From positions 458,558-522,557 of the forward strand of contig NIVC01000172.1 of assembly GCA_002269645.1 (NCBI GenBank): a stretch of DNA of 64,000 nt, in the 5' to 3' direction. The DNA comes from Macrostomum lignano (Eukaryota). Position numbers and translations under genes: made by a program. How positions within the stretch are numbered: the stretch's first letter is position 1; each line of letters opens with the position of its first letter. Positions 9,776-15,700 of the stretch are shown piece by piece. The notes under the pieces are model-generated. The model saw only the letters and a program-made list of their open reading frames with translations, did no database searches and was not told the origin of the DNA.

Positions 9776-12700
9776 ATGGCTCATAATCCTAGTCAGCAGC
9801 ATGATGTCCCAAAAACTGAGCTTGAAGAGATTCAAATGGTTATGAACCAGAAAACTGATGAGGTGAGTTGATGCATACTATTTATTTCTTGCTTTGCAAA
9901 TTATTTATGCTAAGTCAACATCAATATCTATGTTCATGTACATGTATACATGTAAAGCTTACAACTACTTGATGTCTTCATGTCTTTTACAATTTTTTTC
10001 CAAACTTCCTTTTTATATAGACAGTAGGAATATCTACTAGTATGTATGGTAATCGTCTTTTTTGCTAGTGTTTGTCATTTTCATGAATTTTTCATATTAT
10101 TGTACTTTTTTGTACTGTTAGTAGTCATTATATATTTATATCTGTCTTTTTGTGCTTAGTAGTGATAAAAATTAAATTTTACAGAAATCATCCTCTTTTA
10201 ACCTTAATAGCTTGTAATATAGTTATAGTTACTTCTGTCATTATCGCCTGTGTTTGTCTTTGAATTTGAGAAAGAAGTTAATCCTCTCTGTTTTGAACTT
10301 TTAGTTGGTACAATTTTACATACATTAGTCATAAGGAATGAATATATATAAGAAAGATCTTTCATTGGTTGAGAAGTGAGAATGTCGACTTTGGGGTCTC
10401 GACCAATACCTTTAGTAGGCCTGGCTTGTTTCCCCATAAAATATAAGTTCAAAACACAGATTTTATGAATGCTGACTTATCAGATAATTTAGTAGAGGCC
10501 TGCAGTGTAATGTCTGTGCCTAGTGCTAGCGGAGTTATGGCTGATTCTGCCCAATGGCTACTGAACGCCAGTGGAGAGCCGCGACCCCTAACCGAAGCCG
10601 AAGAGCTGCTGCTAGATGTTGATGGGTGCCAGAGAGTTGTAAGAATGACTGTGCTGTTATGCTTGTGCCCATCTGTGCGTCTGTTCATCTGTGCTGTTGC
10701 AAAAGTATAGGCATTAAACTTTTTAAAATTTTGTTCCAATTTCAGTATTACGAAATAAGCTTAACCTTCAATTTTTGTAGTTTGTAACTACATCGCTTTC
10801 GCTTTATCATTACAGTCTCTGGAGTCTACTCGGCGCATGGTTACCCTCTGCGAAGAGGTGAGCATTTTTGCTGGTTTTTTTCTGTTCGTGCTTGGCTTAA
10901 CGTATTCTTCTTAAGCTTCTTAATTTAGCAATTTTATTTACTCTAACTTTCACTTAGTTAAATATATTTTTTAATAACTAATTTGTTTTCTTTGCCGTGC
11001 ACCAATATTCATAGCGAATGATTTTATAAATTCAGCAATGCTTCATATGCTACAAATATAGACTAAAAAAATTTAAAATTATATCCTTAGTAAAACAGCG
11101 TTTCTACTTCCAGTTCAGTAGCAAAGAAGAATACATAAGCTATTTTATAAAAATTAAAGCAGCTCAAATGGCTTTAAATGTTTAAAAGTCAAGAGCTTGC
11201 AGTCGTAAACAACTTGCTAATTGATTTAGCCACATGTACATTAGCCAGCGTCACTGAAATGTACATGGCAGCTTAGACTGGAATGCCAAGAAAGGCAATA
11301 AAATTGGGCGGCGGGCGGAGGTAAGAGGTTCTCTGTGGAAAAACGCAATTGGACGGTTTCAGCTTAGGGGGTTAAGAGCCAATTAATGAGCCTCGTCTTT
11401 AAAAAACATTAAAATTTTTCTGTTTAACTTGCTAATAAAGTAAATAGTCAAGGCAGCTAAATTGACTTTGATAAGCTTAGAAGCCCAAGCTTGCAGGCGT
11501 AAACAACTTACTAATTGGTTCAGCAGTAATGTACATTAGCAATTAGCCAGTCCACTGAAATGTACATGGCAGCTTTAGGCTGGAATTCCGAGAAAGGCAA
11601 TAAAAATTTGGGGGTAGTGTGGAAAAGCGCGGTTGGAGGGTTTAAGCTGGGGGGGGGGGTAAAAGCCAATAAATGAGCCTTGGCTTGAAAAATACATTAA
11701 AATGATTCTGTTTAACTTACTACTGAACTGACAGTAGCTTGCACGCAAATGTGCTGAGTGGCCTATCTAGTTATTCTAGTGTATAAGACAAAGGATGATA
11801 GGTTTCATAGGTAAGCTAGTTTAATAATTTAAGCTAGTCCCCCCTGACTTCTCCCTGTTTCCTTCACTAGTCAATATTGAGTTGGATTTCCTAATAAATA
11901 TCATTTATTATACGAGTATGATTGCAGTTAACACGGTTTACTCTGGTTTACCCAATTGCACAATGTTTTACACTGCCAGCATTCTATTTACTCTGTGCTA
12001 TTACATTAGATTTGAATTGCAGCAGAGTTATCAGTTATAATATTCAGTACACGTATTTTTTGACTCTCAGGCTAAAGAGGCGGGCATATCCACTCTTGTC
12101 ATGCTAGACGATCAGGGCGGTGAGTATGTAATAATACACCTAAATCTGAAATTGAAGCATAGCGCAACTATGAAATCTTGCCAATTATTTTTTAAATATT
12201 TTTTTATTGCCAGCGAAAATTGCATTCGATTGATTTGAAGGGCGAGGTTCAATCGGGTGATTTTTAATTTTGTGCGCGTTTTTTGTTTTTTTGTGCAAGG
12301 TTGATGCTGTCATTATAGGAGCTCCTGGGTGAATCAATGAGTCTGTTGGTATTAAGCAGGGTCGGAAAACTCCTCTCCATCAGGCCCTCGGGTCCTTTGA
12401 AACTTCACAATAGCAATCCGACCCGCTCAAGGTTTGTGTCTCTTATCTCCTCTCTCCCCTCGTCTCTCCTCTCATCATCTCACCCATCCTGTCTTTTCTT
12501 TCCTCTCTCATCTGGCCCGCAACCATAGCTAAGTCTCTACCAGGCTTATGCGTCAGCATAATGCATCAATTTGTGTGTTAATTTAATTATAGTTGATGGA
12601 TAAACGTTGGATTATCCTTCTTGATTTTTGTTATAATCTTGTCAGGCAAAATTAATCTGCTTTGCTTGTCTAGCCTCCGACCCTCTGAGCTGCCTGCTTT

Positions 12701-15700
12701 TTTGCGCGGTGTCTTGTTGCTTTCCTGCCGTTTGTCTTGAGCTCAGTAACAGTTATAATCCCTTTCATTCGAATGAGCTGCTCTTATTAGCAATATATGG
12801 GGTAGACAGGTGGCCCTTACGGACACTTAGACTAGATGATTGGGTTCATAAGGCCTAAATTTCGTATCGCTAAAAATTCAAGCATCCACCTTTAGGGAAC
12901 TTTTATTTAAGCCAATGCCCCTGACTAAGGGGCCAGAGAGAAGAGAGAGAATATCTAAGGAGAAGATAGGATCGAGCATAGGGGAGAGGAGAAAGGAGAG
13001 AAGACAGGAGAGATGGGAGAAGGGAGAGGAGAGATGGGAGAAGGGAGAGGAGAGATGGGAGAAGGGAGAGGAGAGATGGGAGAAGGGAGAGGAGAGATGG
13101 GAGAAGGGAGAGGAGAGATGGGAGAAGGGAGAGGAGAGATGGGAGAAGGGAGAGGAGAGATGGGAGAAGGGAGAGGAGAAATGGGAGAAAGGAGAGGAGA
13201 AATGGGAGAAGTGAGAGGAGAGATGGGAGAAGGGAGAGGAGAGATGGGAGAAGGGAGAGGAGAGATGGGAGAAGGGAGAGGAGAGATGGGAGAGGAGAGA
13301 TGGGAGAAGGGAGAGGAGAAATGGGAGAAAGGAGAGGAGAGATAGGAGAAGGGAGAGGAGATTAGAGAGAAGAGAGCTGGGAAGAGACAAACCTTTATTG
13401 CTATTGTCAAGTTTCAAAGGACCCGAATGACGGATAGGAAAGTTTCGCTTGTCACGGTTTTGCAGCTGAGCCTTGTTTTATGCGATGCAAAAATTAGGTT
13501 TTATGAACTTTTAGGTCTTATAAAATTTAGGTCTTATGAAGTTATCAAGCGCCCTCTTTGACTGACAGACAGGTATTCGCTAATCCATCTCGATTAATAT
13601 ATCGATTGACATGATGGCTATCTATTTAATTTGTTAATAAAGACTTTATTGATTCATCATTTAGGCTAGAGAGTCTGGACTTCAAGCAATTGTAATGCTT
13701 GATGATCAAGGAGGTTTGTTTGATATATATTTATCTTTTCTACTAAAAGTCGGGGTCGTGAAATTCTACTAAAATTTAATTGACAAAATATCATTGATTA
13801 GGCTTAATTCAGGGTGTGTTTTGGTACTAAATTTGAAGAATGCCAGCTGTTGTCTTTGTTGCTTTGAGTCTTTATTCGGCTTCTATTCTCATAATTATCA
13901 TATTCGGTAGCGAGATGCACCACAGGTTTACTCGGGTTATTGATGCGCATAATTAGATTTTCAGTAGGTTATTGCAACCCAAGTTTATCACCTGTAATAA
14001 ATTCATTGATTAACAGAGCAACTGGACCGCATCGAGGAGGGCATGGACCACATTAATCAGGACATGAAAGATGCCGAGAAGAATCTGGACGATCTAAACA
14101 AGTGCTGCGGGCTCTGCATCCTGCCTTGGAATAAGTGAGTTGCTCCTCAACTTTTCTGTTCCCCAACCTTTGTGTTCCCCAACCTGTGTGTTCCCCAACC
14201 TGTGTTCCCCAACCTGTGTGTTCCCCAACCTGTGTTCCCCAACCTGTGTTCCCCAACCTGTGTTCCCCAACCTGTGTGTTTCCCAACCTGTGTTCCCCAA
14301 CCTGTGTGTTCCCCAACCTGTGTGTTCCCCAACCTGTGTTCCAACCTGCGTGTTCCCCAACCTGCGTGTTCCCCAACCTGTGTGTTCCCCAACCTGTGTG
14401 TTCCCCAACCTGTGTGTTCCCCAACCTGTGTTCCAACCTGCGTGTTCCCCAACCTGCGTGTTCCCCAACCTGTGTGTTCCCCAACCTGCGTGTTCCCCAA
14501 CCTGTGTGTTCCCCAACCTGTGTGTTCCCCAACCTGTGTGTTCCCCAACCTGTGTTCCCCAACCTGTGTTCCCCAACCTGTGTTCCCCAACCTGTGTGTT
14601 TCCCAACCTGTGTGTTCCCCAACCTGTGTGTTCCCCAACCTGTGTGTTCCCCAACCTGTGTGTTCCCCAACCTGTGTGTTCCCCAACCTGTGTGTTCCCC
14701 AACCTGTGTTCCAACCTGCGTGTTCCCCAACCTGCGTGTTCCCCAACCTGCGTGTTCCCCAACCTGTGTGTTCCCCAACCTGCGTGTTCCCCAACCTGTG
14801 TGTTCCCCAACCTGTGTGTTCCCCAACCTGTGTGTTCCCCAACCTGTGTTCCCCAACCTGTGTTCCCCAACCTGTGTTCCCCAACCTGTGTGTTTCCCAA
14901 CCTGTGTGTTCCCCAACCTGTGTGTTCCCCAACCTGTGTGTTCCCCAACCTGTGTGTTCCCCAACCTGTGTGTTCCCCAACCTGTGTGTTCCCCAACCTG
15001 TGTTCCAACCTGCGTGTTCCCCAACCTGCGTGTTCCCCAACCTGTGTGTTCCCCAACCTGCGTGTTCCCCAACCTGTGTGTTCCCCAACCTGTGTGTTCC
15101 CCAACCTGTGTGTTCCCCAACCTGTGTGTTCCCCAACCTGTGTTCCCCAACCTGTGTTCCCCAACCTGTGTTCCCCAACCTGTGTGTTCCCCAACCTGTG
15201 TTCCCCAACCTGTGTTCCCCAACCTGTGTTCCCCAACCTGTGTTCCCCAACCTGTGTTCCCCAACCTGTGTTCCCCAACCTGTGTTCCCCAACCTGTGTT
15301 CCCCAACCTGTGTTCCCCAACCTGTGTTCCCCAACCTGTGTTCCCCAACCTGTGTTCCCCAACCTGTGTTCCCCAACCTGTGTTCCCCAACCTGTGTTCC
15401 CCAACCTGTGTTCCCCAACCTGTGTTCCCCAACCTGTGTTCCCCAACCTGTGTTCCCCAACCTGTGTTCCCCAACCTGTGTTCCCCAACCTGTGTTCCCC
15501 AACCTGTGTTCCCCAACCTGTGTTCCCCAACCTGTGTTCCCCAACCTGTGTTCCCCAACCTGTGTTCCCCAACCTGTGTTCCAACCTGCGTGTTCCCCAA
15601 CCTGTGTTCCCCAACCTGTGTTCCCCAACCTGTGTTCCCCAACCTGTGTTCCCCAACCTGTGTTCCCCAACCTGTGTTCCCCAACCTGTGTTCCCCAACC

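Follow-up and report, generated by a model that had tools for sequence, protein, structure and literature searches.

The stretch of DNA analyzed here (the window) comprises 64,000 nucleotides of Macrostomum lignano contig NIVC01000172.1 (positions 458,558 to 522,557 of the forward strand) and contains a complete plus-strand SNAP-25 gene in which one coding exon, equivalent to human exon 4, is present in two copies, termed A and B. The gene was assembled from tblastn searches with human and fly SNAP-25 and by reading the splice junctions; window positions 9000 to 19500 showed 100% identity to scaffold NIVC01000172.1 of the M. lignano assembly GCA_002269645.1. The first coding exon (9776 to 9862), located by tblastn with SNAP-25 N-termini and by its splice context, contains the ATG, encodes 29 residues, and ends at a gtgagt donor. 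The 42-nt exon that follows (10816 to 10857; 14 residues), the equivalent of human exon 3, is the upstream partner of both exon 4 copies. Copy A (12071 to 12119), the canonical flatworm form, has a ctcag acceptor and a strong gtgagt donor and is separated by an intron of 1545 nt (12120 to 13664) from copy B (13665 to 13713), an unannotated alternative with a catttag acceptor and a weak gtttgt donor. On the scaffold, A and B occupy positions 470628 to 470676 and 472222 to 472270, respectively. The downstream partner of both copies is a 118-nt exon (14017 to 14134) equivalent to vertebrate exons 5a and 5b. The gene is completed by a linker exon (17745 to 17867), an exon with most of the second SNARE motif (17955 to 18099), and the last coding exon (18907 to 18969), which includes the TAA stop codon. 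The linker exon ends at a GC-AG intron (17868 to 17954; donor gcgagt at 17868), which is the sole splice that preserves the reading frame GGYVTR/ITKDARE. All of these features are on the plus strand.

The 208-amino-acid product of this gene aligned end to end with SNAP-25 proteins of many phyla, identifying it as a member of the SNAP-25 family (Qbc-SNARE). Its homologs carry the PF00835 domain, and the CCGLC cluster is present in the product, which is near-identical to the M. lignano proteins A0A1I8H8I6 and A0A1I8JCF1 in UniProt; both of these models use exon A. The boundaries of the 42-nt, 49-nt, and 118-nt exons are those of the human gene, and the duplicated exon thus corresponds to human exon 4 and to human residues 39 to 54.

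Both copies are 49 nt long, start in phase 0, leave one base over, and are flanked by AG...GT borders of U2-type splice sites. The sequence of exon A is cag/GCT AAA GAG GCG GGC ATA TCC ACT CTT GTC ATG CTA GAC GAT CAG GGC G/gtgagt, and that of exon B is tag/GCT AGA GAG TCT GGA CTT CAA GCA ATT GTA ATG CTT GAT GAT CAA GGA G/gtttgt. They share 32 of 49 nucleotides and 10 of 16 amino acids. When the peptide encoded by A was scanned against all 127,904 windows of 16 codons on both strands of the 64-kb sequence, A itself scored 77, B scored 58 (z of ~8.4), and the next best score was 24; the resemblance between A and B is therefore not due to chance. Inclusion of either A only or B only results in a SNAP-25 of 208 amino acids. 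When both are included, a TAG codon arises at 13667 to 13669, three bases into B, and the longest open reading frame (ORF) is then one of 155 amino acids that starts with MLDDQG; when neither is included, the frame shifts and an early stop follows, with a longest ORF of 140 amino acids. The pair thus has the genomic features of a mutually exclusive exon cluster, namely, (i) neighboring homologous exons, (ii) equal length, phase, and canonical splice sites, and (iii) nonproductive products when both or neither are included. A and B are tandem duplicates, whose length, phase, and splice sites render them mutually exclusive in the protein. A first-pass annotation, made from the window alone, had described two homologous exons of equal phase whose joint inclusion or omission disrupts the frame; coordinates, sequences, and peptides were reproduced exactly. 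Its observation that the 118-nt exon, which is duplicated in vertebrates, is single-copy here also held, since one copy was found in the window.

In human-equivalent numbering, the two isoforms would differ at positions 40 (Lys in A, Arg in B), 42 (Ala/Ser), 44 (Ile/Leu), 45 (Ser/Gln; Arg in human), 46 (Thr/Ala), and 47 (Leu/Ile), whereas G43, V48 to L50, acidic residues 51 and 52, and Gln53 of the zero layer are unchanged. This alignment bears out the mapping to residues 39 to 54 and the list of variable positions proposed earlier. According to the 3-4 spacing of the heptad pattern, counted from Gln53, residue 46 is core layer -2. Residues K40, D51, and E52 are part of the primary interface with the C2B domain of synaptotagmin 1 (Syt1), as the first-pass annotation had stated; among these, only position 40 changes in B, and the change is conservative (Lys to Arg).

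The distribution of the differences indicates that B has been maintained as coding sequence. Of the 16 third codon positions, 10 differ between A and B, compared with 7 of the 33 other positions (Fisher p=0.006). Six codons (G, V, L, D, Q, and G) differ only synonymously, as had been noted before, and codons 10 to 16 (VMLDDQG) contain five synonymous changes and zero replacements. We then simulated a pair in which the A lineage acquired synonymous changes only and the B lineage drifted neutrally for an equal time, and counted the runs in which B retained an open frame, AG and GT borders, and no more than seven differences outside third positions. At a mean third-position divergence of ~10/16, less than one run in 1000 ended with such a B copy; at a mean of 8/16, 0.6% of runs did. 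The simulation and the codon pattern show that, over most of the time since it arose, B was maintained by purifying selection as a coding exon. The earlier claim of purifying selection on both copies is thus supported by the synonymous excess (p=0.006) as well as by the improbability of neutral decay (<0.001 to 0.006).

The gene is present in a second genomic copy on scaffold NIVC01000001.1, in which A and B are each identical at 49 of 49 positions and the splice sites of B are also identical; the introns of the two copies differ by 3.4 to 4.7%, with many indels in addition. There are two further M. lignano SNAP-25 paralogs that are 81 to 83% identical (loci L001 to L004), each with a single exon 4. 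Every other flatworm SNAP-25 gene examined, both of these paralogs included, encodes the same A peptide, and the flatworm proteins among the best 120 matches to the B isoform all have the A block. A search for degenerate remnants of B in two paralog pairs, two Schistosoma loci, and one cestode found none above background. Exon B is thus the first exon 4 alternate seen in a flatworm among those sampled.

We consider it moderately probable that B is a real alternative exon 4 that is spliced in place of A, so that the gene would give rise to two isoforms of 208 residues; the use of B is predicted from the genomic sequence, and B is likely to be functional, minor, and mutually exclusive with A. 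According to this proposal, each productive mRNA would contain one of the two copies, exclusivity being enforced by the reading frame, and transcripts with both or neither would be unproductive and probably substrates of nonsense-mediated mRNA decay (NMD). The exclusivity would not be steric, because the intron between A and B is 1545 nt long. With its strong donor, A would probably be the default, and B, with its weak donor GTTTGT and AT-rich codons, would probably be a minor regulated choice that may, for example, be cell type specific. The isoforms may differ in SNARE zippering, given the Thr/Ala exchange at layer -2, or, close to the synaptotagmin interface, in the binding of partners, and we infer that the likeliest effect would be a modest change in N-terminal zippering or partner affinity. 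As to the choice between the exons, a segment of 221 nt around B folded no better than shuffled sequences (z=0.2). An inverted repeat in the intron between A and B (12379 to 12417 and 13397 to 13435; 39 nt, 87% complementary), which adjoins a CT-rich tract that faces a GA-rich array, was considered as a stem for exon choice. Compared with the second genomic copy, one arm has four substitutions and the other zero, with no compensatory change; the repeat was discarded as a candidate and is probably a repeat relic.

A number of observations weigh against the use of B. (i) No existing gene model uses it, and the M. lignano database proteins, which form three clusters, all use A or start downstream, none containing B; a protein search with a B-centered query of 59 amino acids returned short fragments only, none of the B type. 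(ii) Of all donors in the gene, GTTTGT is the weakest. (iii) The G+C content at third codon positions (GC3) is 0.12 in B, 0.56 in A, and 0.67 in the whole coding sequence, which would also fit a drift toward noncoding composition. (iv) Nothing B-like was found along the whole gene in the two remaining M. lignano paralogs, at two Schistosoma loci, or in the cestode Anoplocephala. (v) The identity of B in the two genomic copies is a weak argument for constraint, since at 4.7% divergence the chance of zero change in 49 nt is ~9%.

The same observations favor the alternative that B is a relic, which was functional for most of its history and is now unspliced or spliced at noise level, with disabling mutations not yet accumulated. 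The other flatworm genes and both paralogs would then have lost B or never had it, and the comparison with the second copy is compatible with a recent relaxation of selection. However, two copies that evolve separately both preserve the frame, both splice dinucleotides, and all seven C-terminal residues; regulated minor exons, too, typically have weak sites and an unusual composition; and the simulation indicates long-term constraint. We regard a relic as unlikely. Much less probable is that B acts mainly as a poison exon, which, when joined to A, would lower SNAP-25 output via NMD without encoding a second protein. The immediate stop that results from inclusion of both exons agrees with such a role, as do the weak donor and the AT-rich content, both reminiscent of regulated cassette exons. 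A poison exon would, however, not require conservation of amino acids, yet B retains 10 of 16 residues, among them the entire VMLDDQG segment, its changes are synonymously biased, and the homologous alternates in other phyla are annotated as in-frame substitutions. That B is an assembly artifact, namely, a misjoined allelic or paralogous copy of A in a duplicated, repeat-rich genome and in a gene whose introns are full of tandem arrays, can be dismissed for practical purposes, as two independent scaffolds, whose introns have diverged, both show the A...B arrangement with comparable spacing and B differs at 16 to 19 of 49 nt from every A exon of the three M. lignano paralogs.

Outside the flatworms, exon 4 was found to be multiplied in several protostomes. 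In the sea slug Elysia chlorotica, two tandem 49-nt exons with AG/GT borders (at 24358 and 26091) are flanked by the 42-nt and 118-nt exons. Three copies each are present in the annelid Owenia fusiformis (53416, SKEAGIKTLVMLDEQG; 56539, STAVGVKTLVNLDEQR; 57643, SQDTGAKTLVMLQGQG) and in the fly Condylostylus (7572, SKEAGIRTLVALDDQG; 9990, SEEAGGKTLDYLSKQG; 10492, STEVGMRSIVMLDEQG); a single copy was found in the rotifer Rotaria. Among the best 120 matches to the B isoform, mollusk RefSeq isoforms form pairs that contain either SKEAGIKTLVMLDEQG or SQDVG[VI]KT[IL]VMLD.QG, the two forms encoded by the tandem exons of Elysia. Using the fly protein with its third exon 4 copy as the query, we retrieved insect isoforms from many orders that group into three classes: SKEAGIRTLVALDDQG (type 1); SHEVGMKTLVMLDEQG or S[AT]EVGMR[ST]IVMLDEQG (type 2, with Drosophila innubila X1, D. 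yakuba isoform E, D. santomea X4, and Aedes X4 among its members); and the divergent SE[ED].G..TL..L.HQG (type 3). Isoforms with either variant are annotated in Drosophila species, and the matches to this query also included a barnacle variant (SQDVGAKTMVNLQAQG). In 15 within-species comparisons (eight mollusk and seven insect), RefSeq isoforms of equal length differed only in the block of 16 residues. Many full-length proteins with the alternative block were found on Logan contigs of 1 to 2 kb, which, for a full-length protein, implies spliced mRNA that contains this block. Across protostomes, exon 4 is thus widely subject to alternative use, as databases and RefSeq isoform lists already show. 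The searchable literature contained work on vertebrate exon 5 and no description of an invertebrate exon 4 switch; an article by Johard et al. from 1999 is said to mention "sequence variability" of cockroach SNAP-25 and may be relevant.

Three observations were made in passing on the insect sequences. The type 3 variants (for example, SEDAGANTLQLLNHQG; Condylostylus locus L014, 9990 to 10038) lack the acidic pair 51/52 and often also V48/M49; as this pair contacts the synaptotagmin C2B domain, type 3 isoforms, if translated, should couple differently to the calcium sensor. A model of the beetle Exocentrus adspersus (P0265) contains two exon 4 copies in tandem (ALDDQGELSHEVGMKTLVMLDEQG), an annotation error that is explained by an exon 4 cluster. 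The sequence of Nesidiocoris tenuis (AP028921.1, 317439 to 320068) was rejected as a source of exon structure, since it is an intronless ORF of 630 nt, probably a retrocopy, and hence uninformative.

The protostome clusters resemble that of M. lignano in exon length (49 nt), phase (phase 0 with one base over), AG/GT borders, and location, with the 42-nt exon upstream and the 118-nt exon downstream. The clusters of Elysia, Owenia, and Condylostylus begin with a canonical copy of the SKEAGI type, followed by one or two alternates, and M. lignano likewise has the canonical A followed by B. The alternates retain G43 and Q53 and vary at positions that also vary in M. lignano B. In contrast, B can be assigned neither to the type 2 class (S[HQT].VG[MV]K.[LI]VMLDEQG) nor to the type 3 class (SE[ED].G..TL..L.HQG), and it is unannotated, known here from genomic sequence alone, and present in one of three paralogs. 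The first-pass annotation had proposed an independent, convergent switch in an invertebrate lineage and a search for both peptides in flatworms and other lophotrochozoans. Independence from the vertebrate exon 5 event stands, since a different exon is involved, whereas the copies in Elysia, Owenia, and Condylostylus and the 15 RefSeq comparisons show that the switch is not peculiar to one lineage. The search in relatives had a divided outcome, as the exon is multiplied in Elysia and Owenia and B is absent from Schistosoma and Anoplocephala.

Two origins of B were weighed. The odds are a little better than even that B arose by a separate duplication of exon A in the flatworm lineage, convergent with both the vertebrate exon 5 pair and the other protostome clusters. 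B is nearest to its own A (10 of 16 residues; BLOSUM score of 58, compared to means of 49, 44, and 29 for types 1, 2, and 3, respectively, over 16 residues with saturated third positions), it shares with A the flatworm-specific Ala1 and Asp14, and this origin requires no losses in the paralogs or the parasitic flatworms. However, clusters that match in position and order occur in insects, mollusks, and an annelid and make an ancestral cluster plausible; the differences between B and A include positions 2, 4, 6, and 9, which are those that separate type 2 from type 1, with a Leu-to-Ile change at position 9; and gene conversion could account for the shared Ala1 and Asp14. That B is instead an old protostome alternative exon, retained here and lost elsewhere in flatworms, has a probability just short of even. 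The comparison is limited by the small number of residues, 16, and by the saturation of silent sites, which in all comparisons also ruled out dating the duplication by synonymous sites. A more far-reaching version, which we put forward only tentatively and consider rather improbable, is that the exon 4 cluster is ancestral to protostomes and more than half a billion years old. A switch in the N-terminal, priming-phase half of the first SNARE helix would then have preceded, and would parallel, both the vertebrate exon 5 switch and the split of SNAP-23 and SNAP-25, and B, which a single M. lignano paralog out of three would have kept and the parasites lost, would be its only known flatworm survivor.

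In vertebrates, SNAP-25a and SNAP-25b result from the mutually exclusive exons 5a and 5b (Johansson et al. 2008, PMC2581893), a duplication that bony fish and higher vertebrates have and that Torpedo and Drosophila lack (PMC2581893). The M. lignano pair resembles this system in that the same gene has a tandem exon duplication, that one of two exons would be chosen, and that a few residues of the first SNARE helix are exchanged. Exclusivity based on the reading frame is common to both, as neither 118 nor 49 is a multiple of 3. They differ in the exon involved, since in M. lignano it is not the 118-nt exon but the preceding 49-nt exon that is duplicated. Accordingly, the vertebrate pair covers residues 55 to 94, comprising the C-terminal half of the first SNARE motif (SN1) and the palmitoylated cysteine cluster, whereas the M. 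lignano pair covers residues 39 to 54 (layers -4 to 0).

The same block of 16 residues also differs between vertebrate SNAP-23 (PDB 1NHL, SQDAGIKTITMLDEQK) and SNAP-25 (SKDAGIRTLVMLDEQG), with Lys40-to-Gln and Leu47-to-Ile exchanges. Both exchanges also separate the mollusk type 2 exons (SQDVGIKTIVMLDEQG) from type 1 exons. M. lignano B shares only the exchange at position 47 and, unlike SNAP-23, retains a basic residue (Arg) at position 40. A functional parallel between the exon 4 variants and the pair SNAP-23 and SNAP-25, whose diversity arose by gene duplication and not by alternative splicing, is a conjecture.

Several further observations concern the annotation and surroundings of the gene. 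The GenBank protein for the locus, PAA88907.1, comprises 140 amino acids and starts with MDHINQ (window position 14043), so that four or five coding exons were missed. Precisely this protein of 140 amino acids (PAA88907.1 and PAA94740.1; window 14043 to 18969) is the longest ORF obtained when A and B are both skipped; the transcript model behind it may have contained neither exon, or its 5' end may simply have been truncated. The model A0A1I8H8I6 is misspliced at the GC-AG intron, with a loss of six residues. A further candidate exon, which would encode an alternative N-terminus of this SNAP-25, lies downstream of the first coding exon and upstream of the 42-nt exon (10465 to 10638, plus strand; phase 0, donor GTAAGA at 10639). 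It is retained in the second genomic copy (91% amino acid identity) and in paralog 2 (L001, 14451 to 14522; 25 residues, 1e-6), weakly so in Elysia (L007, 22591 to 22653), and is similar to alternative N-termini of Schistosoma and Physella isoforms. Tandem arrays make up most of the introns of the gene (12982 to 13361, GA-rich, 21 nt x 18; 14157 to 15853, 14 nt x 114; 16324 to 17660, 30 nt x 45; and 18116 to 18741, 24 nt plus (TCTG)n) and explain most of the length difference between the two genomic copies. The downstream neighbors (L005, 16387 to 24927, corresponding to window positions ~20429 to 28969) are genes for a 153-amino-acid PF06541 protein, a TCP-1/Cpn60 chaperonin subunit (530 amino acids), and an acetyl-CoA synthetase-like protein. 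The order of these neighbors is identical on the second scaffold (L006), and the two SNAP-25 copies are thus syntenic duplicates.

As to what these data mean, the annotation of M. lignano SNAP-25 can be corrected, given that PAA88907.1 is incomplete and no model contains exon B. Exon B adds a member to an existing, little-discussed protostome pattern and is not a new kind of switch: insects, crustaceans, mollusks, and an annelid have alternative exons for the 16 residues that span SNARE layers -4 to 0 and include a portion of the synaptotagmin interface. If the ancestral origin of the cluster were true, Macrostomum, which is tractable for transgenesis, would be a system for asking what the switch does. 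If the isoforms differ in assembly kinetics or in coupling to the calcium sensor, they would be an invertebrate counterpart of SNAP-25a and SNAP-25b, and exon duplication would then have diversified this one helix more than once.

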